Below the pieces are notes generated by a model that saw only the letters and a list, made by a program, of their open reading frames with translations, had not been told where the DNA came from and did not search any database. Below are positions 1 to 38,990 of a stretch of 64,000 nt of DNA, piece after piece; the stretch's first letter is position 1; each line of letters opens with the position of its first letter. The stretch lies in sequence record NC_027399.1; one strand, 5' to 3'. Made by a program: the position numbers and the translations under genes.

Positions 1-1
1 T

Positions 2-391
2 AATTCAGATCGTCATGAAACAGTACTTGCAGTACAGAAATATATTGAAAGCAATCTTCACAAACCGGTTTGGTGTATGGTAAGCACTGAAGAACAACTT
101 GGAATTACTTTTGGTAGTGAAGATGGTTATGTTGCACAATTGATTATGGATTTTAGTACTGAAGAAAAATTCATTTCTTATCGTGATAAAATTTATCAAG
201 CACTATTACGCAGTGGTATCAGTGAAGATCAAGTACCAGAAATTGCACCAATGAAAGATTTTTTCCTTATCCCAAGTGATGAAAAATATGATGCAATGTT
301 TTATAAAATGAATGTGCCAGGTGTTATTGTTGAACATTTTGATGATGATAATACTGAGTGGTTGGACTTGGGTGATGACGAAGACTATTGA
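2..391 (+). CDS. Hypothetical protein, probably 5'-partial
   Basis: The frame is open from nt 2 to the stop at 391; acidic C-terminus. Confidence 0.7.
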   Translation, partial: NSDRHETVLAVQKYIESNLHKPVWCMVSTEEQLGITFGSEDGYVAQLIMDFSTEEKFISYRDKIYQALLRSGISEDQVPEIAPMKDFFLIPSDEKYDAMFYKMNVPGVIVEHFDDDNTEWLDLGDDEDY

Positions 392-539
392 TGATTTTTA
401 TTGCTTTATAGAAAATACAACTGCACTATTAGAGTATTTTGACAATACTCCTTATCATAAAATATTAGTGCAGGTTTATGATGATCTTTTTTATGAATAT
501 GGTAACTATTTTGATTGGTTCGCACATCTTAGTACATAA
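375..539 (+). CDS. Small hypothetical protein
   Basis: ATG at 375 (MTKTIDDF...) overlaps the end of the previous gene. Confidence 0.5.
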   Translation: MTKTIDDFYCFIENTTALLEYFDNTPYHKILVQVYDDLFYEYGNYFDWFAHLST

Positions 540-804
540 CTTTTTATTACTTCTTAATAACAAAATACAAATTAACTATATTTTCAGAGATGATCCTTTA
601 TATAAAAATGAAATCTCTGATATATACAAGAATATGACAACTGAAATCTATCATTATTACATGAATAAAAAATTCAAGTGCTATTATATCAAAGGAATTG
701 TAAAACCAGCAAGGTTATATATATGCACTAAAAATGATATGGTGAGTAAAGTTATAGATATCAAAGATTTAAAAGATGAGGTTCTTAGGGATGAGTGGTG
801 TTGA
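478..804 (+). CDS. Hypothetical protein (start uncertain)
   Basis: ORF track; tightly packed with neighbours. Confidence 0.55.
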   Translation: MMIFFMNMVTILIGSHILVHNFLLLLNNKIQINYIFRDDPLYKNEISDIYKNMTTEIYHYYMNKKFKCYYIKGIVKPARLYICTKNDMVSKVIDIKDLKDEVLRDEWC

Positions 805-1108
805 ATGTGTGAAAAAGAAAATCGAATTTATACAAATGACATGTAAGGTAATTTTCGATTTAGCACACAGTAACAACATGCCAACAGCATTTAAAGAAGT
901 ACTATTATTAAGTACTGAGATTATTTTTGAAGAATATTTCAGTACTAAATTGTATTTATATTATGGTAATTTTTGCAAAATTCACGGCTTTACTATAAGT
1001 AGTTCAAATGGAAGTGTTTATATTTTAACTTCATTTGGTCATTTCGAATTAACAGAAAGTGCTGTAAAAAATTTATATGAATATCCATCAAAAATGAGAG
1101 TAAATTAA
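776..1108 (+). CDS. Hypothetical protein (start may be 791)
   Basis: ORF track; the stop overlaps the next ATG. Confidence 0.6.
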   Translation: MRFLGMSGVECVKKKIEFIQMTCKVIFDLAHSNNMPTAFKEVLLLSTEIIFEEYFSTKLYLYYGNFCKIHGFTISSSNGSVYILTSFGHFELTESAVKNLYEYPSKMRVN

Positions 1109-1308
1109 TGAAAAAATGTTCGTGTTGTGGATCTACTCAAATTGCACGTTTTCGATTAGATTCTGATTGGGCCGTTGGTTGTGGTGATTTCTACCCAGTT
1201 AATGATGATTCAGAATATACTGAAGAACAACTGAAAGATTTTGATAATAGTTGGAGACCAGATTTTGAGTTTCTATATTGTTTGAATTGTAATTCGGTAC
1301 AGGAATGA
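1108..1308 (+). CDS. Small Zn-ribbon protein
   Basis: CSCC at the N-terminus and CLNC at the C-terminus; coupled to neighbours. Confidence 0.65.
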   Translation: MKKCSCCGSTQIARFRLDSDWAVGCGDFYPVNDDSEYTEEQLKDFDNSWRPDFEFLYCLNCNSVQE

Positions 1309-1574
1309 TTAAACCACATTATCATTGTATTCACTACTTAGGAACGACTATTTGTAATGAATTTACGAAAAATAAACATCATCAATTCAGTACTGTAATA
1401 CGTGATATATTGTTATACATTGAAAAAGAATTAACATTATTTTATAAAAATACCGTATATACTTATTGTAATAAAAAGTACAAAATACTCAATTTATCAT
1501 TTGATGATAGAGGATTTTTATATGTAATGAGTACTGAATATTATACTCATTTGGTTCTGCATACGGATTTATAA
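1305..1574 (+). CDS. Hypothetical protein, small paralogue family
   Basis: ATGA overlap; about 90 aa, helix then beta-rich half. Confidence 0.65.
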   Translation: MIKPHYHCIHYLGTTICNEFTKNKHHQFSTVIRDILLYIEKELTLFYKNTVYTYCNKKYKILNLSFDDRGFLYVMSTEYYTHLVLHTDL

Positions 1575-1843
1575 TGAACAAACAATTATTATACTGTAAA
1601 GTGGTTTATTACTTGACTAATTCAGTACTGAATATGAATAACACACATTTTAACTATTCACTATGTATTAGAAGTATTTTAGATAACATAGAAGATGAAC
1701 TAAATGTGTTATATACTGGAAAAACATTCACAAAAAACAATATCCGACACAAATGTAATGGTATTGTTATAACATATGGGCGTATATTTGCTTTATACGG
1801 TATACGTTACACTTGCTATTTTCATAGGGCTAAATTTAAATGA
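1574..1843 (+). CDS. Hypothetical protein, small paralogue family
   Basis: TAATG coupling; resembles 1305..1574 (IRxIL..IE.EL..LY....T). Confidence 0.65.
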   Translation: MNKQLLYCKVVYYLTNSVLNMNNTHFNYSLCIRSILDNIEDELNVLYTGKTFTKNNIRHKCNGIVITYGRIFALYGIRYTCYFHRAKFK

Positions 1844-2457
1844 AAACAGATTATTCAAAACTAAGAACAAAACTTTATGGAATTATAGAGGGGCTATCTC
1901 TAATCGATCCAAAGTACTATGAATTGCGTCGTTTACTTGCATTCGCCGAACAATATCATTGTAATACACGAAAAGATGGTTCTGAAGAATTCTCTCATCA
2001 ATTACAAATGCTTGGATTGGCTCTTACGCTTCATGAATCGATGTGTAAGCCGTTTGAAGTATACATGGCAATTGTATCTCATGATTTAATCGAAGACTAT
2101 CCAGAAGCTTCTGAAACGCTTGAGATGTTATTCCCTGATGTAATCCAATATAGTCGCAAACTGGCTAAATTTAAAGATTCAAATACTGATGAAGATTCGT
2201 ACTATGGATACTTTAATCAGCTTTCTAATTGTCAAGTATGTTCAATTGTAAAACTCGTAGATAGAGTGCACAATTTGAGTACCGCACCTGGTGTATTCAG
2301 TACTGAAAAAATTATAAGTTATTGTGATGAAACTGATAAGTATTTCTTTGATATGATAAAAAAATCCAAAGTTATGTTCAATCAACGTTCAGCATATGAA
2401 GTTCTAAAATTCATGTTGAATACCGAAGTCAGTACTATCAGGAATTTATTAAAATGA
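1840..2457 (+). CDS. RelA/SpoT-type HD-domain hydrolase (stand-alone small alarmone hydrolase-like)
   Basis: AEQYH..TRKDG...H, SHDLIED and VKLVDRVHNL match the HD motifs of SpoT/Mesh1. Confidence 0.8.
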   Translation: MKTDYSKLRTKLYGIIEGLSLIDPKYYELRRLLAFAEQYHCNTRKDGSEEFSHQLQMLGLALTLHESMCKPFEVYMAIVSHDLIEDYPEASETLEMLFPDVIQYSRKLAKFKDSNTDEDSYYGYFNQLSNCQVCSIVKLVDRVHNLSTAPGVFSTEKIISYCDETDKYFFDMIKKSKVMFNQRSAYEVLKFMLNTEVSTIRNLLK

Positions 2458-2660
2458 AAATAGTTTTAGAATTTGCATTTATTATTTTTGGTTTCATTTG
2501 GTTCACTGCTATTTCAATTTTTGCTGGATATCTCATTATTAAACCGGATATGTTGATTTTCTACTGGATTTTGACTTTAATTGCATTCATCAGTGTTGTC
2601 TATTTGTCTTATAAACTGGTATATCTATATGCAGATGAAATCAAAAAATATAACACTTAG
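2454..2660 (+). CDS. Small two-TM membrane protein
   Basis: Two hydrophobic segments. Confidence 0.7.
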   Translation: MKIVLEFAFIIFGFIWFTAISIFAGYLIIKPDMLIFYWILTLIAFISVVYLSYKLVYLYADEIKKYNT

Positions 2661-2693
2661 TTGGTTTTATGTTGAAAAGATTTAAAATCGATA

Positions 2694-2723
2694 TTGAATA
2701 AACATTTCTCCTTGTGATATAAT
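2694..2723 (+). promoter_or_regulatory. Sigma70-type early promoter (extended -10)
   Basis: TTGAAT-18-TATAAT with TGn; upstream of SD AAGGAG and ATG 2768. Confidence 0.7.
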
Positions 2724-2767
2724 ACTATATGTAAAAGGATTTTACATAAGCACAAGGAGAGTCAAAG

Positions 2768-3496
2768 ATGATAGATAATTTAGCATTTGCATCCGAAATG
2801 GCTAATCAGTTGAACATGAGTAATTTTCAGAGTCTTACACCAGTGATGGCGGAATATGCTGTTGCTCATGCCACCTGTGGTGAACAAGTTGGATCAGCAA
2901 ATTTATTAGCTGATGTATTCAGTACTGTACAAAGTACCCAATACAGTGTTAAAATGTATAGGGATAAGTTTGTACAGTTGTATATGCTTGATGTAATAAA
3001 AGAAGAACCAGAATGGACTGATTTTATTATTGAACGTAGGATTAGTGGTGTTTCTAATCCAGATAAAGATGCAGTACAAGTATTTGATGAAATACTTCAA
3101 GATGTATATAGTAATGAACAAAAAAGTCTAAATCAATACAATGTACGTTCTACCAAGACAGTGCTCGTGGGATTTGATGAAGATGAAGAATATTACTATT
3201 TTCGTTGTACTGAAGTAGATTTTAAATACGAAACTCCCAGTACAGTTAAAGTTAAAGAATTTACTGAAAAGAGTAAAAACTTCAAAAAACATTCTTCTAA
3301 TATTAGTAATATAGTTGGTTATAATAAAGATGGTATTGACATATATCAATGGGTACACCCAAATAACTCAACTTATACCAGATGTTTAAAGAAACGTTAT
3401 AATTTAAAACAAGAAGAATCATTTTATTTTAAGATAAAGAAGCATTCCTATCAACGACCTGATGAATCAGTGTTACTTGGTATGATTTACTTCTGA
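2768..3496 (+). CDS. Hypothetical protein, monocistronic
   Basis: 242 aa, strong SD, own promoter and terminator. Confidence 0.8.
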   Translation: MIDNLAFASEMANQLNMSNFQSLTPVMAEYAVAHATCGEQVGSANLLADVFSTVQSTQYSVKMYRDKFVQLYMLDVIKEEPEWTDFIIERRISGVSNPDKDAVQVFDEILQDVYSNEQKSLNQYNVRSTKTVLVGFDEDEEYYYFRCTEVDFKYETPSTVKVKEFTEKSKNFKKHSSNISNIVGYNKDGIDIYQWVHPNNSTYTRCLKKRYNLKQEESFYFKIKKHSYQRPDESVLLGMIYF

Positions 3497-3504
3497 TTTT
3501 AGTC

Positions 3505-3537
3505 GTCCAGTACAATATAAGTACTGGACATTTTTTT
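3505..3537 (+). terminator. Rho-independent terminator
   Basis: GTCCAGTAC-aatataa-GTACTGGAC followed by a T7 run. Confidence 0.8.
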
Positions 3538-3547
3538 AAGGTAAAAA

Positions 3548-3826
3548 ATGAATATATTACAAAAAGTTAATCTATTTGGAAAAGCGTATACAAATGCTTT
3601 TTATGGTATTGATAAACGTTATGAATATGCTAATTTTTTAAATAGAGAAATTGAATTTAGTGGAATGAATAGGTTATTGTCTGGTAAACGTGTAACTATT
3701 GTTTTTAATGGTTATCAGGGATATATTAATCAAATTCGTCATCTAGATGAGAAAATTTTTGCATACGTTTATACTAATAATGGAAATTTATTGATTAATT
3801 TATCTTTTTTGGAATTGATTGAATGA
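3548..3826 (+). CDS. Hypothetical protein, small paralogue family
   Basis: SD AAGGT; LSGKRV...GYINQI pattern. Confidence 0.65.
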   Translation: MNILQKVNLFGKAYTNAFYGIDKRYEYANFLNREIEFSGMNRLLSGKRVTIVFNGYQGYINQIRHLDEKIFAYVYTNNGNLLINLSFLELIE

Positions 3827-4107
3827 AATTAATAGACCAAGTTATTCTTTATAAGAAAGTATTTGATTATATGGAAGATTTTCTTGATGGTACACATTAT
3901 GAATGTTGCATTTATGTTACATGGAAAAAGAATGTAATGGAAATAGAAAAAGCTACCATTTCTAAAATAGTGCGTATAAAAAGCCTTGATACTATTGGTA
4001 CTATTATTGAACTTAATATAGGAAGATATTTTGCATTTTTTGGTGTAAAAGTACCTGAAAACGATTTTGCTCTTATAATTTCATTAGATGATATTGAGTT
4101 TCTTTGA
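3823..4107 (+). CDS. Hypothetical protein, small paralogue family
   Basis: ATGA overlap; GTIIEL; ends LDDIEFL. Confidence 0.65.
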   Translation: MKLIDQVILYKKVFDYMEDFLDGTHYECCIYVTWKKNVMEIEKATISKIVRIKSLDTIGTIIELNIGRYFAFFGVKVPENDFALIISLDDIEFL

Positions 4108-4136
4108 GTTTTATCTATTTGGTAATATAAAATATT

Positions 4137-4448
4137 ATGGATAAATTACACAAAGCAGTATTATTTTTAAAAGCATATAGCTATGAGTACTTACAAAGTC
4201 ATGGAAAATGGAATGGTAGTTATAAGGATTTATATTCATCTGTTTTTCTTAATGAAGTAAATCTTGTGATATCAGAAGTACAAAAATTATATGAAAGAAA
4301 ACTTGTGCATACGAGATTTGGTATTGGAATTATTATTAGTATATTTTGCTTCACATACGGTTCCTTTTTAGTCGCAATAGAAACAATAGTAGAAGGCAAA
4401 CCACAAACAATAGTATTAGAATTAAGTGAGATATATCTGGATGAATGA
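4137..4448 (+). CDS. Hypothetical protein, small paralogue family
   Basis: RKLVHTRFGIGIIISI, SH3/KOW-like. Confidence 0.65.
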   Translation: MDKLHKAVLFLKAYSYEYLQSHGKWNGSYKDLYSSVFLNEVNLVISEVQKLYERKLVHTRFGIGIIISIFCFTYGSFLVAIETIVEGKPQTIVLELSEIYLDE

Positions 4449-4713
4449 ACATTTTAATAGAATACAATTAATCACCCAACTTCTACAAATGGTTGATGAC
4501 ACATTTGATGAATTAAAAAATAATCTTATGAATAAGAAAATCAAATGTAAGGTATATATGAATGATGGTGATTATTTCGATATGCGAGAAGTTGAAGTAA
4601 CTGGAATTGTTACTAATATTACTTTATATGAATATGATCTAACTATTACAGTGAAAATCGACGAAGGTCGTGAATATTACGTTTGTAATCAACATATTGA
4701 GGTGGTTGAATGA
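4441..4713 (+). CDS. Hypothetical protein, small paralogue family
   Basis: LMNKKI...GIVTNI; ATGA overlap into the ligase. Confidence 0.65.
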   Translation: MNEHFNRIQLITQLLQMVDDTFDELKNNLMNKKIKCKVYMNDGDYFDMREVEVTGIVTNITLYEYDLTITVKIDEGREYYVCNQHIEVVE

Positions 4714-5855
4714 GTTTAGTAGAAATCTATAATGATTTAATGAATTTAGTACAAAATAATGAAGCATTTGAATATAAAGATCAGCGTTCAATTGGTGGTG
4801 GTTTGTATAGAATCTTTTCTTATCGAATGGCCTCATATACTGATTTCTGTGAACCTAATGCCAAAGAAACACGAGGTTCAATGTGGGAAATCAATGAAGA
4901 TGGTACTATGATTCGTTGTGCAGCCCGTACTATGAATAAATTTTTTAACGCATATGAAAACCCATTCACAATGTTTGATAAAAATATGCTTAGTACTGAA
5001 ATTGAAGTGGCGATGGATAAACGAGACGGTTCTATTATCAGTACTTTCAAGGATAATGACGGAATTATTCGTTGTAAATCTCACACTTCTCTATCTTCAG
5101 AACACGCAATTAATAGTAATGCTATCATGCGTCCTGGTTCTAGTTTATATCAATACGTAGAAGAAGCTGAACTTCAACAATATACCGTGAACCTCGAATA
5201 TACTTCACCTGAATATCGTATTGTATTGCCATATCAGAGCGAGAAACTGACTGTATTGAACGTTCGTCATCGAATCACTGGTGAACTACTGTGTGGTGAA
5301 AAACTGCGTCAGAAGTTTCCTATGCTCGCTATGCGTAGCACTAATATGATAAATGGTCAGAACATTGCAAGTAATTTTCCAATGCGTACTACAGTACTTG
5401 AAACGGTGGAAGCAGTAAAAGGAATGCGAGACATTGAAGGATTTGTGGCAGTACTGAAAGATGGCACAATGTTTAAAATTAAAACAGATTGGTACTGTGC
5501 TTTGCATTTCAATAAGGATAGTATTAATGTTGATTCTAGACTTTACGAATCAGTGCTACAAGGTGCAAGTGATGATTTAAGGCAAATGTTCTCTAATGAT
5601 CAGTATTGTCTTGATAAGATTAAAAGGATGGAAGATTTAGTATTCAGTACTTATAATTCTTTTGAAAAATTTGTTAATGATTTTTACAATGAATTTAAAC
5701 ATTTAGAACGCAAAGAATATGCACTAAAAGTACAGAAACTTCTACCAAAAGAATTAAATCATCAGGGTTATGCTTTCTCTTTGTATAACAATAAACCGTT
5801 TGATTTAAAGGAAAACATGATCAAATACAGCAAAGAAGTATTAAAAGATTTCTAA
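4710..5855 (+). CDS. rnlA: RNA ligase 1 (T4 Rnl1 family)
   Basis: Motif I KRDGS; EGFVAVLKDGTMFKIKTDWY matches T4 Rnl1 motifs IV/V; RTMNKFFN. Confidence 0.92.
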   Translation: MSLVEIYNDLMNLVQNNEAFEYKDQRSIGGGLYRIFSYRMASYTDFCEPNAKETRGSMWEINEDGTMIRCAARTMNKFFNAYENPFTMFDKNMLSTEIEVAMDKRDGSIISTFKDNDGIIRCKSHTSLSSEHAINSNAIMRPGSSLYQYVEEAELQQYTVNLEYTSPEYRIVLPYQSEKLTVLNVRHRITGELLCGEKLRQKFPMLAMRSTNMINGQNIASNFPMRTTVLETVEAVKGMRDIEGFVAVLKDGTMFKIKTDWYCALHFNKDSINVDSRLYESVLQGASDDLRQMFSNDQYCLDKIKRMEDLVFSTYNSFEKFVNDFYNEFKHLERKEYALKVQKLLPKELNHQGYAFSLYNNKPFDLKENMIKYSKEVLKDF

Positions 5856-5867
5856 TAAGGACACCAA

Positions 5868-6041
5868 ATGAAGAAAAGGAATTCGTGGAGTACTCCTGAA
5901 GAATATAGGAAGATTCAGTGTTATTTTGATACAATACACAAAGAAAAATCCAGTTCAGGAGTACGAAAAAACAGAAATAAAATTAATACTAAAAAGAAAG
6001 AACGTATATATTCTTTAGAACGTCATACAAGAGAAGCTTAA
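5868..6041 (+). CDS. Small basic hypothetical protein (57 aa, not in ORF track)
   Basis: SD AAGGA, ATG 5868, MKKRNSWSTPEEY...REA*. Confidence 0.55.
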   Translation: MKKRNSWSTPEEYRKIQCYFDTIHKEKSSSGVRKNRNKINTKKKERIYSLERHTREA

Positions 6042-6054
6042 ACGGGAGATTATT

Positions 6055-6267
6055 ATGAAAGTACAAATTCAGCACAGTATTGTTCAAGACATGTCAGTGA
6101 TTAAATTTAACAATCTTCATGATTTTTTTAGATGCATTGACTTTCTCGATAATTCATGTTTAGAATATGATATGATAAAATACAGTTCAGTTCTTGATAC
6201 TGCCAGTATCAGAGTGAATGAATTGGTACTACATAAATTTAGCAAACGTTTCGGGATTGGGAAATGA
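6055..6267 (+). CDS. Hypothetical protein
   Basis: SD GGGAG; ATGA overlap downstream. Confidence 0.65.
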   Translation: MKVQIQHSIVQDMSVIKFNNLHDFFRCIDFLDNSCLEYDMIKYSSVLDTASIRVNELVLHKFSKRFGIGK

Positions 6268-6530
6268 TTATGTATGAAAAATTTATATCAACTAAAGAAA
6301 TGCTTCATAGGTTGATTGACGACACTGACAAAGAAATTATAAGGTATTACACTGGAAAAAAAGTACAAATTTCTGCTGAACTCCTTGAGGAACTCGAATT
6401 GGAATCAGAGGATGATATTGTATGGACTATATATGCAGTCACTGTATTCGATGATTGCCTATTTTTTGATGTAGAGCACGGTGATGATGACTTACAAGAT
6501 TTAGAAATAGATGATCTTATATTTCTTTGA
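6264..6530 (+). CDS. Acidic hypothetical protein, small paralogue family
   Basis: YTGKKV...TIYAV; ends IDDLIFL. Confidence 0.65.
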   Translation: MIMYEKFISTKEMLHRLIDDTDKEIIRYYTGKKVQISAELLEELELESEDDIVWTIYAVTVFDDCLFFDVEHGDDDLQDLEIDDLIFL

Positions 6531-9693: not shown

Positions 9694-9696
9694 TTT

Positions 9697-32142: not shown

Positions 32143-32516
32143 TGCGTAAAATTGATTATGTAGCATTTTTATTAAAGGATGGTACTGTAATTGAAAAGCA
32201 CATTATTCGTATGCCAGCGTATAATGAGAAGGGATGGTATAATAGTGTAGTTAGTATTGATGCATTCAACAATCGTGAGTCCGAACGATTTTATCAAATT
32301 AGATGCGTTAAAAAGAAACCACTTCTTGGTTTATTATGCCATTTATATAGATTAACTGAATGGGAACGTGATACACAGTTATCAACTAATCGTATGAAAA
32401 AGTATGATCCTTCATATGAACACCCTTACAATTTAGTACCATGCATTGAGCATCAAAATGTGTTTGACTTTTATAAACACATCGGGTATGATTATAAAAA
32501 GAAGCGATACATTTAA
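32142..32516 (+). CDS. Hypothetical protein
   Basis: TAATG coupling. Confidence 0.7.
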   Translation: MRKIDYVAFLLKDGTVIEKHIIRMPAYNEKGWYNSVVSIDAFNNRESERFYQIRCVKKKPLLGLLCHLYRLTEWERDTQLSTNRMKKYDPSYEHPYNLVPCIEHQNVFDFYKHIGYDYKKKRYI

Positions 32517-32527
32517 AGGTAAATTTA

Positions 32528-33730
32528 ATGAAACTTTGTAAGCATTGCCAGAAACCAAAATTCAAACATCAACGTGAAACACTGAATTGTCCAAGTCCAA
32601 CTCGTTCATTGGCTGCGAATTTTAATAGTACAACTGTATATGATGAATATGAATCCGATCCAGTACATTATGCTATTGCACAAGTACAATTGAAAGCTGA
32701 TATTGCTGAAATTACTGCTGGTCTTGATGAACTTCTTGCTAAAGGTGATATTAACGAACAATCATATAAAATGAATTTAGCAAATGCAACTGCCAATCTT
32801 ACTCGTATTGCTGAAAATAGTAAGCGACCAGAAATTACAGAATCTAATTCAGTACTGTATGTTTCTTTTAACGATGTGGTGTATTTTTATGATGCACAAT
32901 GGGAAGGAAATGCAGTACTAGAAGGTGAAAAAGCAGTAGAAGATTTATATTTTTCTAATAAATTCAAAGAATATTATGATGCTGGTATTGTACCAGTATT
33001 AGAAGTGCTAGATAATGAAAGCACTGAAATGATTAAAGTAATTTATAATGAAGAACGTGCTGAATTTATTTCTGATATTAGTCGTGATGAACATTTGAAA
33101 GAAAGAGATACAAAACAAGAAGAAGTATCTTTATCTGATTTGAATAATGATGATTTTGTACTTCCATTGCATGATAAACAATGGGTACTAAATACTATTC
33201 GAAAAAATTCTGACGATGATTGTGATGTTGAAGAACTTGAATGTGCATTGAAAAGCTGTGATGGATCTGTTGTTCTTGGTAAACCAGATACAGAAAACGA
33301 TGGAACTTATCTAATGCTTGGTATGAAAACCAACGATGGTTTCCTTGAAAATGATTACTGTCTTCTTGATAGCATTTTGCTTAAAGAATGGAGTGTACTT
33401 GAAAATTCAGGGTTGATTGAAATTGGTACTTTTGAAAGCCACATTGACATTGATGAAAGCAAAAATAAAGGCATTACTACTTTTATGTCTGAAGTAATTG
33501 CACGTTCATTATTCAGTACTGAAGCATTGGATATCAAAAGTACTTCTGATTGTAAAGAATTCTTGAAATCAGAATACAATGTACAAAAAGCAAAACGCAT
33601 CAAGAAAGAAAAATGGGGTAAAATTGAGTACCGAATCTTTGAAGATGATAATGGTGAACAGTATACTATTGTCACTTACTGTGATAAGTTGATTTCACAT
33701 TATCCATTTGCTTACAATGAGGATTATTAA
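32528..33730 (+). CDS. Acidic hypothetical protein with an N-terminal CxxC..H..C motif
   Basis: 400 aa; SD AAGGT. Confidence 0.75.
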   Translation: MKLCKHCQKPKFKHQRETLNCPSPTRSLAANFNSTTVYDEYESDPVHYAIAQVQLKADIAEITAGLDELLAKGDINEQSYKMNLANATANLTRIAENSKRPEITESNSVLYVSFNDVVYFYDAQWEGNAVLEGEKAVEDLYFSNKFKEYYDAGIVPVLEVLDNESTEMIKVIYNEERAEFISDISRDEHLKERDTKQEEVSLSDLNNDDFVLPLHDKQWVLNTIRKNSDDDCDVEELECALKSCDGSVVLGKPDTENDGTYLMLGMKTNDGFLENDYCLLDSILLKEWSVLENSGLIEIGTFESHIDIDESKNKGITTFMSEVIARSLFSTEALDIKSTSDCKEFLKSEYNVQKAKRIKKEKWGKIEYRIFEDDNGEQYTIVTYCDKLISHYPFAYNEDY

Positions 33731-33948
33731 TGATCATCTATGCTGTTCAGGAAATTGATTTTTATACTGAAGAATACGACAATCAAAAAATTCGTAAATT
33801 ATTTTTAAATTTAGACGATGCACTTAATTATGTAAAAACTACATATGATATTAAAATTACTAACGTTAATACATGTAAAACATATATAGAAAATGATGAA
33901 GAACGTGGAGAAGTTTCCGTTGGTATTTATGAAATGAGTGTGTTATAA
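33730..33948 (+). CDS. Hypothetical protein
   Basis: TAATG coupling. Confidence 0.65.
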   Translation: MIIYAVQEIDFYTEEYDNQKIRKLFLNLDDALNYVKTTYDIKITNVNTCKTYIENDEERGEVSVGIYEMSVL

Positions 33949-33970
33949 TTAAATAATTTTTAACAAACAA

Positions 33971-34089
33971 GAAAGTACTGTCGCCGTGCATCTGGGTAAA
34001 ATCAGTATAAGTCCGTAAAGCACAATGCCAATACTCAACCATCTCCCTACTCCTTGAGATCTACCAAAGTTGAGGGTGGTAGTACTTTC
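33971..34089 (+). ncRNA. Candidate structured non-coding RNA, family unassigned
   Basis: Intergenic and GC-richer than flanks; 15-bp closing stem with three G:U pairs and four internal helices; extended -10 at 33941-49; T tract after the stem. Confidence 0.6.
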
Positions 34090-34099
34090 ACCTTTTTAG

Positions 34100-34345
34100 A
34101 TGAGAAATATTATGATTTTATTAATTATTACAGTACTGTTAGGATTTTTTAATTGTTTGATTTATTTAAGAATTGAAAAGAAAGAAGGATATTGCTTTCA
34201 TAGTACAAAAGATGGTAAATTAGTTTCAATGTTTAGTATAGAATCTCCATCAATTTGTAAATTCTTTATTCTTTTACAATTCATCCCGTTTGTTAATATT
34301 GTTTTCGCACTTTTATATTTCGTAGATATTCTTAATGGACATTAA
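34100..34345 (+). CDS. Small two-TM membrane protein
   Basis: Hydrophobic N- and C-terminal segments. Confidence 0.6.
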   Translation: MRNIMILLIITVLLGFFNCLIYLRIEKKEGYCFHSTKDGKLVSMFSIESPSICKFFILLQFIPFVNIVFALLYFVDILNGH

Positions 34346-34347
34346 TA

Positions 34348-35004
34348 ATGAATATTAAAACAACAGCAGATAAGTACTGGTTCATTATGAACCACCCAAA
34401 ATTTGTAAATAAAAATTACATTGTACCAAAAATCGAAATTGAACCACATAACGTATGTCCACAAACCAACAGAATTGAATCGTATGAATATTTGAATACA
34501 AAAGTCCAGTACTGGATTGAATTTTATATCCCAGTGCAAGAAGATGGGAAATGGGAAATTGCACATGATTACAAACTCGATTGTGGTGGCGACACCATAG
34601 ATGAAGCAATTGACTGCTTATATAATTCAGTACTAAATGAATATGGAAATTATACACAAGAAGAACTTGACAAAAAGGAGGATGAAGTATATAATTACAA
34701 CAAATCCAAGTTTGGTAGTGCAACAATGTCATATATTTTATCTAAAATTCATGAAGACATGTTTGAATACGTAAATGATAAAATTTTGCCAGATGAAGAA
34801 GCGGAATGCTATAATCATAACACGGTTGGTTATTATGAAAAAAAAATTAAAGAATTAAAAGGAACTTTAAATTCATTGATCGAATTCAAAAGAAATTCAC
34901 CAAAAGAAATGCACAAAGTAATTGACAAAGATATAAAAAACGTAGAACATGACATTTTTGCGAATGAAATGAGTATTAAATTTATGGTGGATTTGGATCT
35001 ATGA
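34348..35004 (+). CDS. Hypothetical protein
   Basis: 218 aa. Confidence 0.75.
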   Translation: MNIKTTADKYWFIMNHPKFVNKNYIVPKIEIEPHNVCPQTNRIESYEYLNTKVQYWIEFYIPVQEDGKWEIAHDYKLDCGGDTIDEAIDCLYNSVLNEYGNYTQEELDKKEDEVYNYNKSKFGSATMSYILSKIHEDMFEYVNDKILPDEEAECYNHNTVGYYEKKIKELKGTLNSLIEFKRNSPKEMHKVIDKDIKNVEHDIFANEMSIKFMVDLDL

Positions 35005-35369
35005 ATAAAGATCTTTCAAAATTAGTTGAAGACCTACGGAATATGCCGAAAATTGAACAAGTTGGTTCGTTTAAACGTTTCTTAGTTATTGCACGTGCAT
35101 TAGATAAAAAGGGACGTGTACTCAGTACCAAAACCAATTCATACACACAAACACATCCAGTACAGAAGAAGTTTGCAGTTAGGGCTGGACGGTGTGAAGC
35201 TGTATGGCTCCATGCAGAAATTCGTTGTTTGTTAGCTGCAAGAAAAGATGTTCATACATTACTAATTGCCAGAATTAACAAAGAAGGTCTTCCTGTTCCC
35301 GCAAAGCCATGTTCTGTTTGTGAACTGGCTATAAAAGAATATGGTGTAAAAAGGGTGATTTATACATGA
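35001..35369 (+). CDS. Zinc-dependent cytidine/CMP deaminase-like protein
   Basis: WLHAEI and AKPCSVC motifs. Confidence 0.78.
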   Translation: MNKDLSKLVEDLRNMPKIEQVGSFKRFLVIARALDKKGRVLSTKTNSYTQTHPVQKKFAVRAGRCEAVWLHAEIRCLLAARKDVHTLLIARINKEGLPVPAKPCSVCELAIKEYGVKRVIYT

Positions 35370-35539
35370 AAAATATTTTTAAAAAAGAATATGATGGTGA
35401 AAGCCTTTGTGATGTTCAACGAGATGTTGTTGAAGCATTCAGTACAGTATTCAATCCAGAAATGATTGATATCCCAGTCGATGAATACGGATTTCAGGAA
35501 GGTACATTTGTTGTAAGTATTAAATGGAAGCCAGAATAA
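35366..35539 (+). CDS. Small hypothetical protein (57 aa, not in track)
   Basis: ATGA and TAATG coupling on both sides. Confidence 0.6.
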   Translation: MKNIFKKEYDGESLCDVQRDVVEAFSTVFNPEMIDIPVDEYGFQEGTFVVSIKWKPE

Positions 35540-35667
35540 TGCGTGATCTTATTATGTTCTTTTCTGCAATCATAGGATTATGTACTTATTATTTTTCCAA
35601 TCATTATATTATAGCTATGGTATTTGCTATTATATATATTGCACTTTACAGTACTGACGACGAATAA
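35539..35667 (+). CDS. Small membrane protein (42 aa, not in track)
   Basis: TAATG coupling; hydrophobic. Confidence 0.5.
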   Translation: MRDLIMFFSAIIGLCTYYFSNHYIIAMVFAIIYIALYSTDDE

Positions 35668-35689
35668 AAGCACCCCAGCGGTGCTTTTT
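35666..35689 (+). terminator. Rho-independent terminator
   Basis: AAAGCACC-ccagc-GGTGCTTTTT. Confidence 0.8.
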
Positions 35690-35724
35690 GTATTTGTACA
35701 AAATATAATCTAAGTGACTTTTTA

Positions 35725-35766
35725 TTGATTTAAATCAAGAATAAAATCACCTTTTAGTGATATAAT
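35725..35766 (+). promoter_or_regulatory. FNR box plus -10 (class II FNR-type promoter) of the nrdD operon
   Basis: TTGAT-TTAA-ATCAA 35725-38, centred at 35731.5; TGaTATAAT with -10 at 35761-66. Confidence 0.8.
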
Positions 35767-35822
35767 ATGTTACGTAGCATTTAAATAAATCTACCACATA
35801 ATAAAAAAATCAAGGAAGAAAA

Positions 35823-37628
35823 ATGAATTCAAATAAATTATATGAAGATATTGAAAATTTTATTAATAATACAAATAAAGATATTACTACTGAAAATGCT
35901 AATAAAGATGCCAAAGTAGTTAATACACATAGAGATTTATTTGCTGGTATCCTTTCTAAACATTACGCCCAAGATACTATCCCAGAAGAATTTATTAAAT
36001 GGCACAATGATGGTTATGGACACTGCCACGATTTAGATTACTGGATCTCACCACTAACAAATTGCTGCCTTATTAATTATCCAGATATGCTTAGAAATGG
36101 TTTTAAAATTGGTAGTGCTAACATTGAAGAACCAAAAAGTTTTTCTGTGGCTTGTACGGTACTAACACAGATTGTGCAAGCGGTTGCAAGTTCACAATAT
36201 GGTGGACAATCATTAGCTCACATTGACAAATATTTAGAACCATATGTTCAAATGTCATGGAATAAACTATTAGAAAAACAAAAGAAATATAATTTAAGTA
36301 CCGAATTCATTGAAGACGAATTAAAAAAAGAAGTTTATGATGGGTGTCAAACATTTTTATATCAATTAAACAGTACTGTGTCCGTGTCAGGTCAAACCCC
36401 TTTCATATCTATTAGTTTAGGTTTAAGTACTACTAAATTTGGACGTTTAATTACTGAACAATATTTAAAAGTTCATGAAAAAGGTTTAGGTAAAGATGGC
36501 ATTACTCCAGTATTTCCGAAAGTTATTTTCTTTTTAGAAGATGGTATTAATACTAATAGTACTGATCCAAATTATGATTTAAAACAACAAGCATTACATT
36601 GTAGTTCTAAAAGAATTTATCCTGATTTCGTTAGTGTTACATTGAATAAAGAAACCACAGGTAGTACTTCTGAAGCTGTTACTCCAATGGGTTGTCGTTC
36701 ATTCCTTTCCAAATGGATAAATGAAGATGGTGAAGAGCAATATAATGGCCGTTGTAATTTAGGGGTGGCATCAATCAACCTACCGTTAATTGCTCTTGAA
36801 AGTACGTCAGACGCCGTTTTCTTTGACAAGTTACACCATCACATGGACATGGCATACCGCTTCTTATCACTTCGTGTAGAGCGTTTAAAAGACACAAAAG
36901 CCCGACAGAATCCAGTACTGTACATGTACGGAGCCTTAGCTCGTTTAGATCCAGATGAGACTATTGAGCAACTATTTTACAATGGTAGAAGTTCCATTAG
37001 TATTGGGTATGTTGGTTTATCTGAATGTTCTGAAATTCTTAAAGGAAAAATAGACAAAGATTTTGGATTAAAAGTACTAAAATATATGCAAATGAAATGC
37101 AATCAATATAAAGAAGAAACTAATATCGCATATAGTTTATATGGAACACCAGCCGAGAGTTTGTGTTATAAATTTGCAAAAGCTATAAATGAGAAATACC
37201 CCTCTGTATTGAATAGAGATTACATTAGTAATTCATTCCATTATCCAGTTCATTATGATATTTCAATTTTTGATAAATTTCAATATGAAAGTTTATTTGG
37301 AAATATCAGTTCAGGTGGTAATATTAGTTATGTTGAAACTCCAAATCTTTCTAATAATTTAAAAGCATTAGAAACAATAGTTGATTATGCTAGTACGAAA
37401 GTACAATATTTCGGTATAAATCAACCAGTGGATCACTGCTATGAATGTGGATATGATGGACAATTCAACGTAGATAAAAATGGATATAATTGCCCACACT
37501 GTGGTAATAATGATGAAAGTACTATATCAGTTATTAGACGTGTTTCAGGTTATCTTGGTGCACCAAATAGTCGTCCGTTCAATAAGGGAAAACAAGCCGA
37601 AGTAATTGAAAGAATTAAACACCAATAA
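35823..37628 (+). CDS. nrdD: Anaerobic (class III) ribonucleoside-triphosphate reductase
   Basis: [42 protein letters not shown], CxxC...CxxC and RRVSGYLG. Confidence 0.95.
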
Positions 37629-37638
37629 GGAGTCAATT

Positions 37639-38001
37639 ATGACAATTAAAGCAAAACAAATTTTATCCGGCGAACATACTGGAACAATCTTTTTACACGA
37701 TGATGAATATGCACGTATTTTAGTATCAAAAACATTTTCAGAAGATGATGAAGTATTATTCAGTACTTTTGAAAATGAAGAAATGCGTGAAGTTGATATT
37801 CAAGAACAACCAAAAATTGAAGGTGGTCAACATTTAAATGTAAATGTATTATCACGTTCTCAATTAGAAGAAGCACAGAAATTTCCTGAAAAATATCCTC
37901 AACTTACTATTCGTGTTTCTGGATATGCAGTTCGTTTTAATTCTCTTACGAAAGAACAACAAAATGATGTAATTTCACGAACTTTCACTACTAAGTTCTA
38001 A
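37639..38001 (+). CDS. grcA: Autonomous glycyl radical cofactor (GrcA/YfiD type)
   Basis: [11 protein letters not shown]...[31 protein letters not shown]; SD AAGGAG. Confidence 0.93.
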
Positions 38002-38005
38002 TCTA

Positions 38006-38353
38006 ATGTTTTTTGAATATGATGATGAAAATATATATCCAATTGTGGTTAATAAGTATAAAGAACCATATGATGTATATATTGGAAGAGGTTCAAAATG
38101 GGGTAATCCGTTTACTCACATAAAAAATCGTGATACGAAAGCTGAGTTTATTGTCAATACCAGAGAAGAATCTATTTCAAAATATAGAGAATGGATATTT
38201 AATAAAATTGAAAATGGTGAAATTACCATTGATGAGTTACTAGAATTATCTGGTAAAAAATTAGGATGTTTTTGTAAGCCTAAATCATGTCATGGTGATG
38301 TTCTTGTGGAAATAGTGAGTGCGTTATTAGATGAATTATCAAACAATAATTAA
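38006..38353 (+). CDS. DUF4326-like protein
   Basis: DVYIGRGSKWGNPF...L.GK.LGCFCKPKSCHGDVL. Confidence 0.8.
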   Translation: MFFEYDDENIYPIVVNKYKEPYDVYIGRGSKWGNPFTHIKNRDTKAEFIVNTREESISKYREWIFNKIENGEITIDELLELSGKKLGCFCKPKSCHGDVLVEIVSALLDELSNNN

Positions 38354-38801
38354 AGATGACTTAATAAATGGGGAGGGAGTTAGATGCTCCCTTTTTGTTT
38401 CGGGTTGTTCAATGGGTTGTAAAAATTGCTACAATGAAAAAGCATGGGATTATAGAAGCGGTACTGAATTCGGTACTGAACATGTCGAGCTTATACTAAA
38501 CGAATTATCTAAATCATATATATCAGGATTATCATTACTTGGTGGTGATCCACTTATGCCTAAAAATTTCAGTACTGTGATTGAACTTTGTAAAATTGTT
38601 AAAGAACAGTATCCTGACAAAAATATTTGGTGTTGGAGTGGTTACACACTTGATGAAATTATAAATAATCATGCGGCCCCTGTATTAGAATATATTGATG
38701 TTCTAATTGATGGAAAATTCAAAGAAGAACTAAAAGATTTATCTCTACCATATAGAGGCTCTAGAAATCAACGTATTTTATATAAAGGGAAAGATTTTTG
38801 A
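38331..38801 (+). CDS. nrdG: Anaerobic RNR activating enzyme (radical SAM)
   Basis: NGEGVRCSLFVSGCSMGCKNCYN (CxxxCxxC), GGDP and RGSRNQ. Confidence 0.93.
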   Translation: MNYQTIIKDDLINGEGVRCSLFVSGCSMGCKNCYNEKAWDYRSGTEFGTEHVELILNELSKSYISGLSLLGGDPLMPKNFSTVIELCKIVKEQYPDKNIWCWSGYTLDEIINNHAAPVLEYIDVLIDGKFKEELKDLSLPYRGSRNQRILYKGKDF

Positions 38802-38962
38802 TGAAATATAGTGATCTAATTACTGAAAAAATTCGTAAACGTGGTGATAAATGGGAAGTGACCGATAGTACTGGTAAAAAGGTATTAGGTACACACCCAA
38901 CACGTGAAGAAGCACTTAAACAACTCCGTGCAGTAGAATGGTCTAAGCACAGTGGTAAATAA
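38801..38962 (+). CDS. Small basic protein (53 aa, not in track)
   Basis: MKYSDLITEKIRKRGDKWEVTDSTGKKVLGTHPTREEALKQLRAVEWSKHSGK; TGATG coupling. Confidence 0.7.
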   Translation: MKYSDLITEKIRKRGDKWEVTDSTGKKVLGTHPTREEALKQLRAVEWSKHSGK

Positions 38963-38963
38963 T

Positions 38964-38989
38964 AAAAGCCTCCATATGGAGGCTTTTTT
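38964..38989. terminator. Bidirectional terminator
   Basis: AAAAGCCTCC-atat-GGAGGCTTTTTT. Confidence 0.85.
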
Positions 38990-38990
38990 A

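Follow-up and report, generated by a model that had tools for sequence, protein, structure and literature searches.

In Klebsiella phage K64-1, a giant (jumbo) phage, the palindrome AGTACT occurs 940 times in the 346.6-kb genome against 117 expected copies (7.9-fold, about 8-fold). Because it also brackets early promoters, the motif looks like a genome-wide DNA signal read by a putative phage protein. The enrichment acts at the level of DNA, is strand-symmetric, and does not depend on the reading frame, on codon usage, on protein sequence or on repeat families. No earlier description of such a signal was found in literature searches, in agreement with the remark of a previous sequence-only reading that it is undescribed for this phage group.

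Over-Representation of AGTACT

The window analyzed here is a 64,000-nt stretch of the K64-1 genome (positions 282603–346602). It contains 158 copies of AGTACT, whereas dinucleotide-preserving shuffles gave 15.4 ± 3.7 (maximum 24) and the zero-order expectation is 21.6 (7.3-fold). The hyper-abundance noticed in the sequence-only reading is thus real and stronger than first stated. The 12 positions it listed for nt 1–3000 and the seven positions of the 12-mer TTCAGTACTGAA were all exact on recount. The enrichment was placed at nt 1–38990, where it is indeed present, but nt 38990 is not a boundary, as the sites continue to nt 64000 (Table 1). In the tail-fibre block the density is lower and resembles that of other virion genes. 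Non-coding and coding DNA of the window carry 3.0 and 2.4 copies per kb, which are treated as equal. The GTAC tetramer is itself enriched 2.4-fold (429 copies), and 37% of its copies are flanked by A…T, where base composition predicts about 12%; the excess of the hexamer thus goes beyond that of its GTAC core. Under a maximal-order Markov model AGTACT has a z of only 4.2, since its pentamers are themselves enriched.

Table 1. Coordinates of AGTACT-related features in the window.
Feature	Coordinates	Strand	Details
Small early/middle-type gene region	1..38990		115 AGTACT, 2.95 per kb, 8.7x zero-order; 154 CAGTAC/GTACTG half-sites
Tail-fibre/tail-spike gene block	38991..64000		43 AGTACT, 1.74 per kb, 5.1x
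Perfect 12-bp palindrome TTCAGTACTGAA	1621..1632		Sequence match
Perfect 12-bp palindrome TTCAGTACTGAA	2296..2307		Sequence match
Perfect 12-bp palindrome TTCAGTACTGAA	17426..17437		Sequence match
Perfect 12-bp palindrome TTCAGTACTGAA	23703..23714		Sequence match
Perfect 12-bp palindrome TTCAGTACTGAA	26430..26441		Sequence match
Perfect 12-bp palindrome TTCAGTACTGAA	31466..31477		Sequence match
Perfect 12-bp palindrome TTCAGTACTGAA	33512..33523		Sequence match
8-bp palindrome CAGTACTG, 36 copies	1388..63510		~0.5 expected
CAGTACTG, starts 1–12			1388, 1623, 2298, 2920, 5449, 8994, 12401, 13003, 15076, 15978, 17428, 18487
CAGTACTG, starts 13–24			20763, 23705, 24234, 26432, 28481, 31468, 31877, 32850, 33514, 34131, 34507, 35649
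CAGTACTG, starts 25–36			36371, 36913, 38570, 41045, 43761, 47683, 52624, 52657, 55447, 55771, 59747, 63503
13 AGTACT outside ORF calls	22..56047		22, 3520, 9418, 18368, 19201, 22645, 25405, 26717, 29757, 33974, 34081, 35650, 56042
Intergenic stretch, predicted RNA fold closed by 15-bp stem	33971..34089	+	Stem from AGTACT at 33974 and 34081

Shape and Distribution of the Motif

The most enriched hexamer of the whole genome is CAGTAC/GTACTG (11.5-fold), and the signal in its full form extends over 12 bp as a graded palindrome, TTCAGTACTGAA, present in 33 copies against 0.04 expected. Its enrichment declines smoothly with the number of mismatches (816-, 75-, 11-, 2.8- and 1.4-fold from zero to four). 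The consensus, (T/A)(T/C)CAGTACTG(A/G)(A/T), has two-fold symmetry: in the window, C precedes 77 sites and G follows 76 (positions −1 and +6), and genome-wide the plus strand carries 616 CAGTAC and 644 GTACTG. The two halves co-occur beyond independence, with 242 copies of CAGTACTG against about 158. Words close to the motif are enriched as well. Depletion is seen in no one-base neighbor of CAGTAC (all 18 at least 0.88-fold, median hexamer 0.84-fold), and its transition neighbors stand at 1.5- to 3.0-fold.

There is one AGTACT per ~370 bp and one CAGTAC half-site per 275 bp on average in K64-1, a density kept over the whole genome there and in the inner RaK2-like clade, and 94% of the K64-1 AGTACT sites have a unique 30-nt context. 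The density is uniform across gene classes and reaches 7.7-fold in homing-endonuclease genes. Spacing along the genome is Poisson-like, with no regular array, so that nothing points to an ordered coat. K64-1 otherwise purges palindromes, and the excess of about 820 AGTACT sites, which falls on a single word, is larger than the deficits of the avoided palindromes taken together.

Frame Independence and Proteome Imprint

Reading frames were assigned with our own ORF set, and synonymous codons were shuffled while every protein was kept. The window holds 92, 11 and 42 sites in frames 0, 1 and 2, plus 13 intergenic ones, against 29.7, 1.1 and 9.2 expected from the shuffles (z = 13.0, 9.9 and 11.9; overall z = 19.4). 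The frame and codon-shuffle checks proposed with the sequence-only reading thus show all three frames enriched and a z-score far from zero. About 80% of the AGTACT sites in K64-1 are intragenic; outside the early region, densities are 2.33 per kb in coding and 2.72 per kb in intergenic DNA.

The signal has changed protein sequences, as that reading supposed from Ser-Thr, Val-Leu and Gln-Tyr pairs and from FSTE and ISTK peptides. Ser-Thr is the most over-represented dipeptide genome-wide (817 vs. 458, z = 16.8), followed by Val-Leu (1.59-fold), and Gln-Tyr stands at 1.45-fold, while the reversed pairs TS, LV and YQ stay at 0.9–1.03. The commonest frame-0 tetrapeptides are FSTE, ISTK and FSTK, and AGT-ACT encodes 396 of the 817 Ser-Thr pairs, where codon usage would predict 124.

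Early Promoters and Hairpins

The sole peak in the spacing between AGTACT copies lies at 20 bp (20 pairs against ~2.5 expected), and the consensus of the pair is aaaAGTACTTGACA-N9-tCAGTACTGtATAAT. These paired copies abut the −35 and −10 elements of about 20 early sigma70-type promoters, and AGTACT is present at −5 and +15 relative to −35-like hexamers in some 41–46 cases. The early region has twelve promoters with a 12/12 sigma70 consensus within 20 kb, and a 5′-UTR hairpin frequently has a third AGTACT copy as its loop. The bracketing of promoters is a new finding. The same architecture, with divergent spacers, is found in RaK2 (16 copies), in 121Q (3 copies) and in at least five uncultured genomes of 354–371 kb; the arrangement is kept across the inner RaK2-like clade. 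Promoter association, the stronger half-site CAGTAC and clade-wide occurrence were the three points that the sequence-only reading had overlooked. It had also described the motif as closing the stem of a non-coding RNA at nt 33971. The closing stem is present in the predicted fold (nt 33966–34094, ΔG −32.1 kcal/mol, z −2.56), and the stretch gave no Rfam match in support of ncRNA status.

Conservation and Turnover

Non-coding copies of the motif are strongly conserved: between K64-1 and OU509535 (945 AGTACT sites), 0.46% of non-coding motif positions differ against 2.27% nearby, a roughly 5-fold lower divergence. In coding copies, third codon positions show 32 differences against 46.2 expected, the third position of ACT is as variable inside the motif as outside, and gains and losses are balanced (46 vs. 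58). Per-site constraint on coding copies is therefore weak, a pattern that biased-repair drive would also yield.

The enrichment characterizes an entire clade, of which K64-1 is one member. The trait is common to the inner RaK2-like clade (121Q/phAPEC6, GAP32, Kaldavass and Xanthomonas phage XaC1), with 6.0- to 9.5-fold enrichment in phAPEC6, GAP32, Kaldavass and XaC1. Positional turnover is about 83%, and in XaC1 orthologues only 8 of 47 K64-1 sites are kept in position; the trait is maintained through almost complete positional turnover. AGTACT is absent or avoided in PA5oct (1 of 12 expected, 0.08-fold), XacN1 (0 of 6.5) and muut (0 of 11.8). The trait tracks phage phylogeny, not host.

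A Putative Reader and Alternative Explanations

Our tentative preference is that the motif is the recognition site of a putative two-fold-symmetric DNA-binding factor encoded by the clade. A site for a DNA-binding protein, listed in the sequence-only reading beside possible packaging, condensing and recombination roles and a repair bias, fits best with the graded symmetric 12-bp consensus, the fixed promoter register and the conserved non-coding copies. A homodimeric, sequence-specific protein of the phage lineage would read the motif, and paired sites on the same helix face may be operators at early promoters; in the simplest case, immediate-early transcription would be shut off once the factor accumulates. 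Some 900 dispersed sites could be held by weak selection on number, not position, and would load the same factor on phage DNA (2.7 sites per kb) rather than on that of the host (E. coli has 0.2 per kb). The phage chromosome would thereby be marked or coated, which may serve protection, compaction, packaging choice or transcription control. When about 35 ORFs, from the early region and the surroundings of the sigma-factor gene, were scanned against Pfam and PHROGs, no sequence-specific DNA-binding domain was detected. The only nucleoid-type protein found was the H-NS-like gp430, whose family reads AT-rich minor grooves rather than palindromic sites; its detections were confined to Alcyoneusvirus and Asteriusvirus relatives, some with Salmonella hosts. 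We know of no phage repressor with about 1000 intragenic sites.

It is unlikely, though with a real chance, that a phage-encoded enzyme modifies the motif sequence-specifically, by methylation or some other adduct; the mark would protect or identify phage DNA and so select for density, with promoter copies making early transcription mark-sensitive. K64-1 encodes a Dam-family N6-adenine and a C5-cytosine methyltransferase as well as a Mom-family enzyme. HIP1 of cyanobacteria, a parallel case, is associated with methyltransferases. The avoidance of AGTACT in the unrelated muut, PA5oct and XacN1 suggests AGTACT-cutting restriction, which the clade must tolerate somehow, and the RaK2 authors reported phage DNA refractory to methylation-sensitive enzymes. 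However, the C5 enzyme of RaK2 reportedly acts on CpG, a dinucleotide missing from the motif, and its 46%-identical homologue is encoded by muut, a phage without any AGTACT. Mom is confined to the Klebsiella phages and only an 18% remnant is left in OU509535; this lack of co-variation with the trait argues against it as cause. The 12-bp span of information exceeds the usual methyltransferase site, and protection by a mark leaves the benefit of more sites unexplained. Quite unlikely is a functionless molecular drive, in which near-cognate sequences would be turned into the motif faster than mutation removes it, either by a phage-encoded endonuclease (mismatch or nicking) or by gene conversion that is biased during the intense recombination of these T4-like phages, much as VSP repair drives CCWGG in E. 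coli. Weak coding constraint, balanced gains and losses, uniform and equal densities, Poisson-like spacing and a genome with many endonucleases plus endonuclease VII are consistent with drive, but it explains neither the exact 20-bp promoter register across genera nor the low divergence of non-coding copies, and the lack of depleted neighbor words argues against VSP-type bias. On that ground, and with a C5 enzyme reported as a CpG methylase in RaK2 and Mom not co-varying, the methylation-directed repair bias offered in the sequence-only reading is disfavored. Its broader proposal of a genome-wide cis signal, which works on duplex DNA and takes precedence over codons and even amino acids, is supported by the enrichment of all frames and of non-coding DNA, by symmetric flanks and unique contexts, and by clade conservation with turnover.

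It is very unlikely that the motif serves as a preferred site of the phage type II topoisomerase or stands out by its mechanics, and so helps to untangle or tightly pack the 346-kb genome. Symmetry around a 4-bp GTAC core over ~12 bp would fit 4-base-staggered cleavage, the CA, TA and TG steps, one every 3 bp, give the motif great flexibility, site density is uniform, and the phage encodes a T4-type topoisomerase II, the T4 enzyme being established to recognize T4 DNA site-specifically. Topoisomerase consensus sequences are weak, though, we know of none enriched 8- to 800-fold, and placement beside −35 and −10 stays unexplained. A host reader is highly improbable; the closest candidate, the nucleoid-occlusion protein SlmA, would be activated by replicating phage DNA and block division. 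Infection of Enterobacterales by four of the positive phages and the AGTACT core of the SlmA-binding sequence GTGAGTACTCAC favor it, but SlmA requires G, T, purine, A, G at positions 1–5 (PMC3020112), where the phage motif prefers T, T, C. The SlmA-type flanks GTG and GTA are depleted beside AGTACT (0.37- and 0.46-fold), the genome has only two full consensus sites, and the trait occurs in Xanthomonas phage XaC1 but is missing in E. coli phage muut, so that SlmA is largely refuted. A by-product of composition (codon or dipeptide usage, the GTAC tetramer, spill-over from avoided palindromes, or repeat copies) has a practically negligible probability. AGT, ACT and GTA are favored codons and the Markov z is low, but z = 19 remains after protein- and codon-usage-preserving shuffles, AGT-ACT is in excess among Ser-Thr pairs, non-coding DNA is equally enriched, and the site excess outweighs the avoided-palindrome deficit; shuffles and unique contexts refute codon usage and repeat elements as cause.

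Comparison With Known Dispersed Motifs

HIP1 (GCGATCGC) of cyanobacteria is likewise a short palindrome, over-represented tens- to hundreds-fold, dispersed in coding and non-coding DNA in all frames without a larger repeat, imprinted on proteins and kept in abundance while positions turn over. In contrast, the K64-1 motif belongs to a lytic phage that otherwise purges palindromes, is AT-rich, graded over 12 bp and in fixed promoter register, and has no evident cognate methyltransferase in K64-1, the C5 enzyme being reported as CpG-specific in RaK2. The DUS of Neisseria and USS of Pasteurellaceae are also over-represented genome-wide (9–12-mers), kept by self-recognition and stronger than the choice of codons and amino acids, and many are placed in hairpins close to the ends of genes, but they are asymmetric and read by the competence machinery of the cell, while this motif is palindromic and in a virus without an uptake step.

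Sites of the nucleoid-occlusion factors SlmA and Noc are 12–14-bp palindromes scattered over the chromosome, by which a dimeric protein marks DNA. E. coli has tens of SlmA sites per 4.6 Mb, whereas K64-1 has 940 AGTACT per 0.35 Mb; moreover, its flanks fail SlmA specificity, SlmA-type flanks are avoided, no SlmA homologue was found in K64-1, and the trait extends to a Xanthomonas phage. With mycobacteriophage L5 stoperators, phiC31 conserved inverted repeats and SPO1 TF1 sites, which are dispersed repressor sites, a phage-encoded DNA-binding protein likewise has many targets on the phage's genome, and some of these overlap early promoters. Their sites number in the tens and are mostly intergenic, stoperators being asymmetric and oriented, whereas K64-1 has ~940, 80% intragenic, with a proteome-wide imprint and a putative reader. 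Chi (GCTGGTGG) and other orientation-dependent signals such as KOPS are dispersed short words that distinguish own from foreign DNA for a DNA-processing machine and are maintained by number, not position; they are asymmetric and strand-biased, unlike the equal CAGTAC and GTACTG of K64-1. Chi itself is separately enriched in K64-1, with 13 copies against 3.

Abundance of AGTACT in the K64-1 Genome

The first 20 kb of the window is 100% identical to positions 282603-302602 of AB897757/NC_027399.1, the 346,602-bp genome of Klebsiella phage K64-1 (genus Alcyoneusvirus), and the window therefore corresponds to genome positions 282603-346602. The whole K64-1 genome was assembled from the public record for judgement on the genome scale, and gene positions for the frame tests came from ATG-started ORFs that we called greedily (81 in the window, 525 in the genome); this set agreed well with the RefSeq table. 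Every coordinate given by the sequence-only reading was correct.

The palindrome AGTACT occurs 158 times in the window against 15.4 +/- 3.7 (maximum 24) in dinucleotide shuffles, which is 7.3x the zero-order expectation, and the next 6-bp palindrome reaches 2.1x. The whole genome carries 940 copies (7.9x), and among all 2080 hexamers the half-site CAGTAC/GTACTG shows the strongest enrichment (1260 copies, 11.5x). The 8-bp form CAGTACTG is found 242 times in the genome (2.9 expected) and the full 12-bp palindrome TTCAGTACTGAA 33 times (0.04 expected). It had been asked earlier whether the GTAC tetramer, itself enriched 2.5x, could account for the excess; A...T flanks stand on 37% of GTAC against about 12% by base composition, and the excess of the hexamer remains. 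The maximal-order Markov z for AGTACT in the window is only 4.2 because the pentamers of AGTACT are themselves enriched, and this value does not mean that the signal vanishes. In the public K64-1 record 35 bases are given as N, several within the promoter-rich early region; these may hide a few copies of the motif, and one hairpin reads AGATTCCAGNACTGGAATCT.

Density is about 2-3 per kb genome-wide. Core virion genes (5.5x), replication genes (6.5x), tail fibre genes (5.1x) and homing-endonuclease genes (7.7x) are all enriched, and no lower density was seen for recently mobile genes, represented by the last class. Spacing is Poisson-like (CV 0.91-1.0), with no regularity or helical phasing besides codon periodicity and a 20-bp promoter peak. 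The exception to the even density is the early region at genome 224-245 kb, where AGTACT reaches 7.4 per kb (21.8x) and 11.5 per kb in non-coding DNA.

A Signal Carried by the DNA

The claim that AGTACT sits in all reading frames was borne out. When the window was shuffled synonymously with every protein kept, 29.7/1.1/9.2 sites were expected in the three frames and 92/11/42 were found (z 13.0, 9.9 and 11.9); genome-wide, the frames hold 416/81/253 sites. Without the early region, coding and intergenic DNA are equal in density (2.33 and 2.72 per kb). Codon, dipeptide or GTAC composition as the source is rejected by the protein-preserving and codon-order shuffles and by this equal non-coding density. 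A repeat or mobile element is also rejected, since 94% of AGTACT sites lie in unique 30-nt contexts. The flanks are mirror images: position -1 is C in 77 sites and G in 7, and position +6 is G in 76 and C in 2. The + strand carries 616 CAGTAC and 644 GTACTG, though about 90% of genes lie on that strand, and these equal counts in both orientations argue against a signal acting in RNA. AGTACT is thus a DNA-level signal.

The proposed imprint on the proteome was likewise found. Ser-Thr is the most over-represented dipeptide (817 against 458, z 16.8), followed by Val-Leu (1.59x), and Gln-Tyr stands at 1.45x, while the reversed dipeptides stay at 0.90-1.03. Of the 817 Ser-Thr pairs, 396 are written as AGT-ACT, where codon usage predicts 124. 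The motif has rewritten hundreds of dipeptides.

Motif Anatomy and the Process Behind It

The information in the motif spans 12 bp. The preferred 3-nt flanks are TTC (9.2x), TCC (5.1x), ACC (4.1x) and ATC (3.1x), and enrichment decays smoothly with zero to four mismatches to TTCAGTACTGAA (816x, 75x, 11x, 2.8x and 1.4x). The two halves occur together about 1.5x above independence. Each of the 18 one-base neighbours of CAGTAC reaches or exceeds the genomic median, with no value below 0.88x, and AATACT/AGTATT stands at 1.03x. Such a pattern would be expected of a two-fold-symmetric protein that reads a graded binding energy. It does not fit directional mutation or repair, since the sequence from which such a process starts should then be depleted. 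The methylation-directed (VSP-type) repair bias offered as one cause by the sequence-only reading was consequently dropped, as no neighbour of CAGTAC or AGTACT is depleted; a Vsr gene was not found among the K64-1 annotations.

Like HIP1, the motif shows a genome-wide excess, occurs in all frames and in non-coding DNA without a larger repeat, and keeps its abundance despite turnover. Oriented signals of the Chi/KOPS type are asymmetric and strand-biased, whereas the K64-1 motif is a palindrome without bias. Avoidance of a restriction target (ScaI/Eco255I for AGTACT, RsaI for GTAC) would have the opposite sign to the 7.9x excess in K64-1.

Relatives and Site Turnover

Relatives were compared in samples of 25-50 kb with zero-order expectations. 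No hexamer ranks above AGTACT and CAGTAC in any of the four positive phages.

Motif and GCGC content of relatives (ratios to zero-order expectation, 25-50 kb samples)
Phage	Relationship	Host	AGTACT	CAGTAC	GCGC
phAPEC6	Asteriusvirus	E. coli	6.0x	7.5x	0 copies
GAP32	Mimasvirus	Cronobacter	7.1x	6.4x	0 copies
Kaldavass		Erwinia	9.5x	9.5x	0 copies
XaC1	portal 60% identical	Xanthomonas	8.2x	6.7x	0 copies
PA5oct	sheath 41% identical	Pseudomonas	1 vs 12 expected	0.60x	1.31x
XacN1	portal 34% identical	Xanthomonas	0 vs 6.5 expected	1.21x	0.39x
muut	unrelated	E. coli	0 vs 11.8 expected	1.02x	0.86x

Presence of the trait tracks the inner RaK2-like clade rather than the host. Determination by the host is rejected, because the Xanthomonas phage XaC1 is positive, and the Xanthomonas phage XacN1 and the E. 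coli phage muut are negative. When IMG/VR was scanned for the exact pattern AGTACTTG-N12-AGTACTG, more than one match was found only in genomes of 345-371 kb: 16 in RaK2, 3 in 121Q, 4 and 5 in genomes of 354 and 357 kb, and 4 in a contig of 109 kb. Five further genomes of 355-371 kb had one match each. At all these loci AGTACT is enriched 7-22x and GCGC is lacking, while single matches on contigs of other sizes showed ratios near 1, as chance predicts. Muut, PA5oct and XacN1 avoid AGTACT outright, and XacN1 is also without GATC. This avoidance outside the clade suggests AGTACT-cutting restriction systems in these hosts, which would make the enrichment in the RaK2-like phages more pointed.

Divergence statistics rest on one close pair, K64-1 and OU509535 (1.9% divergence, 91% aligned). 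Between them 94.8% of AGTACT sites are intact (rank 888 of 926), and the median hexamer stands at 91.3%. The two genomes have 836 sites in common, with 46 found only in K64-1 and 58 only in OU509535. Third codon positions within the motif show 32 differences, where the same codons outside it predict 46.2 (P = 0.018). In non-coding DNA, 5 of 1079 motif positions differ (0.46%), against 2.27% for the remainder. Individual coding sites are thus weakly constrained and non-coding sites strongly. Across 22 orthologue pairs of K64-1 and XaC1, 8 of 47 K64-1 sites match in position (0.17 expected), an overlap for much of which conserved Ser-Thr residues can account, and abundance is conserved at 6-9.5x in five genera. 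Turnover of sites is therefore near-complete, with density held.

Possible Operator Sites on Early Promoters

The sole peak in site-to-site distances lies at exactly 20 bp (20 pairs, about 2.5 expected), and 19 of the 20 pairs are at 224-244 kb. Their consensus is aaaAGTACTTGACA-N9-(t/c)CAGTACTG(t/g)(a/c)TAAT, in which one copy adjoins the -35 hexamer and the other provides the TG before the -10 hexamer. With single-sided cases included, about 41-46 promoters have AGTACT at offset -5 or +15 from a -35-like hexamer. A consensus scan found twelve perfect (12/12) sigma70 promoters in these 20 kb, and about a dozen more match at 11/12. The promoters of this cluster lie mostly on the + strand and have tiny ORFs under their control, often with a tandem CTTTACAAATCTTTACAAAA element in front. 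Many transcripts are predicted to open with a hairpin that has the motif as its loop, e.g., GGGAATCAGTACTGATTCCC, and nine of the twelve perfect palindromes of 16-24 bp centred on the motif are in the early region. The sites overlap core promoter elements in fixed register, as the operators of a phage regulator do, and this operator-type arrangement is conserved in RaK2, 121Q and at least five uncultured genomes and is under purifying constraint. No double-site promoter was found in the window, and no link to the late TATAAATA promoters was seen, AGTAC preceding 3 of 36 TGAAACG motifs.

In the related phage CBB, a cluster of RpoD-like promoters was described in the early short-ORF region with no mention of AGTACT (PMC5259590), and none of the literature searched mentions AGTACT or GTAC in these phages. 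The homologous region of Muenster is annotated as a terminal repeat, and several Asteriusvirus records carry the gp430 homologue twice, once under an annotated direct terminal repeat. The terminal-repeat annotation fits DNA that enters the cell first.

Candidate Readers and Modifiers

The K64-1 Mom protein (gp190; Pfam 6.5e-37) is, within the clade, restricted to Klebsiella phages. OU509535, 98% identical to K64-1, keeps an 18% remnant of the gene and still has 945 sites, and Mom is rejected as the driver; phAPEC6 has an RNase HI gene in the Mom slot. Mom is an anti-restriction module that was gained or lost recently. The C5 methyltransferase gp237 is likewise rejected as the driver: 121Q and PBECO4 carry homologues at 63% identity, a homologue at 46% identity is present in muut, where AGTACT has 0 copies, and by the RaK2 report the enzyme is CpG-specific. 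The RaK2 authors drew CpG methylation from bisulfite data that their paper (PMC3622015) does not show. For the Dam-family enzyme gp580, a member of a very widespread family, the phyletic pattern was uninformative.

SlmA binds GTGAGTACTCAC and needs G, T, purine, A and G at half-site positions 1-5 (PMC3020112). The K64-1 flanks fail this requirement, with GTG at 0.37x, GTA at 0.46x and only 2 full-consensus sites in the genome. A phage or host SlmA is further rejected because no homologue was found in the K64-1 six-frame ORFs, the Xanthomonas phage XaC1 carries the trait and the E. coli phage muut lacks it. About 35 ORFs were searched with Pfam and PHROGs and none showed a specific DNA-binding domain. 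The early-region protein gp430 is a full H-NS-like protein: its N-terminus carries the dimerisation domain (Pfam 4e-6), and part of its C-terminus resembles the DNA-binding loop of H-NS (TKGNKGS where H-NS has TGQGRTP). It was found only in Alcyoneusvirus and Asteriusvirus relatives, including some phages of Salmonella hosts, and is worth testing, though not an obvious reader of a palindrome.

GCGC and the Possible Roles of the Motif

GCGC is absent from the window (36 expected) and from the whole 346.6 kb (219 expected). CTTAAG is also absent (118 expected), CTAG stands at 0.30x, and at least 15 six-bp palindromes are present at 0-4 copies. Zero GCGC is common to every motif-positive relative (sampled loci L015, L016, L017 and L020, and IMG/VR loci L023-L082), and GCGC is not zero outside the clade, in PA5oct, XacN1 and muut. 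A 56-kb host sample, taken from E. coli K-12 and not from Klebsiella, has 0.20 AGTACT per kb against 2.7 in the phage and no CAGTACTG; for GCGC the contrast is reversed, with 7.3 per kb in E. coli and 0 in the phage. AGTACT and GCGC together tell phage from host DNA. The absence of GCGC is either restriction-type avoidance carried to an extreme or a sign that a nuclease directed at GCGC is used against host DNA.

The best-supported reading is that AGTACT is a recognition motif for a putative dimeric DNA-binding factor of the phage lineage. Such a factor would use paired operator-like sites on early promoters, and the genome-wide population of sites would be kept by weak selection on their number; from the recognition motif we infer the steps to 'operator' and 'coat'. 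A modification target, conversion drive, or a topoisomerase or mechanical role is possible. The phage-host contrast in the two words makes a self-marking role attractive as a possibility. In a version that we consider unlikely, the motif would be a tag of self-identity: a protein of the clade would read (C)AGTACT(G), 14-fold denser in the phage, and the absence of GCGC would let a nuclease of the phage or of an ally destroy host DNA. If true, this would be a self/non-self system based purely on sequence, in a phage that has neither hypermodified bases nor a phage nucleus; the protein would direct processes limited to phage DNA, for instance protection, packaging or the control of transcription.

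Phage genomes characteristically purge palindromes, and this clade is an extreme example, yet one palindrome is enriched about 8x and its 12-mer about 800x. The force implied is comparable to that behind uptake sequences or HIP1 and has not been described in a virus. The putative factor of the recognition-motif reading could be approached cheaply, as the motif offers a concrete handle for a new DNA-binding or DNA-marking protein in the form of a 12-bp duplex (TTCAGTACTGAA, set beside a comparison duplex with GAGTACTC flanks), and relatives grow on E. coli K-12. It also gives entry to the programme of early transcription in RaK2-like jumbo phages, and these phages are in development for Klebsiella and E. 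coli therapy. AGTACT enrichment with zero GCGC is a simple diagnostic and picked out clade members among metagenomic contigs.

Further Features

Features located in K64-1 and OU509535
Feature	Reference	Positions	Observation
N bases	K64-1 genome	6911-6914, 183702-183709, 242803-242816 and others
Mom-family gene	K64-1 genome	135456-136040	between DHFR and helicase genes (also in RaK2)
Mom remnant	OU509535	292243-292344	short
Sigma70 promoter cluster (12/12 and 11/12)	K64-1 genome	224000-245000	tiny ORFs downstream
Long hairpins	K64-1 genome	225200-226400	three copies, e.g., GCCCACAGGGTGCGG ... CCGCACCCTTTTGGGC
gp430	K64-1 genome	230004-230504	H-NS-like
Gene annotated 'endonuclease'	window	16769-17593	only CapR homology domain matched (Pfam 1e-13), no nuclease fold
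Intergenic 129-nt element	window	33966-34094	multi-branched fold closed by a 15-bp stem (dG -32.1 kcal/mol, z -2.56)

The loop of the long hairpins, about 50 nt, carries GAGAATGATAATCATTTAC followed directly by AGTACT. This element matches 16 of 19 positions of the enterobacterial Fur-box consensus, and the hairpins may be operators that respond to iron, or else structured RNAs. The window was scanned for Rfam families and tRNAs with no match, also at the 129-nt element, opposite which a 30-codon ORF is annotated in RefSeq. The product name 'endonuclease' may be unreliable. The RecBCD Chi octamer GCTGGTGG, a recombination signal of the host, occurs 13 times on the + strand (0.8 expected) and 3 times on the - strand (0.5 expected) and is thus enriched in the phage with a strand bias.
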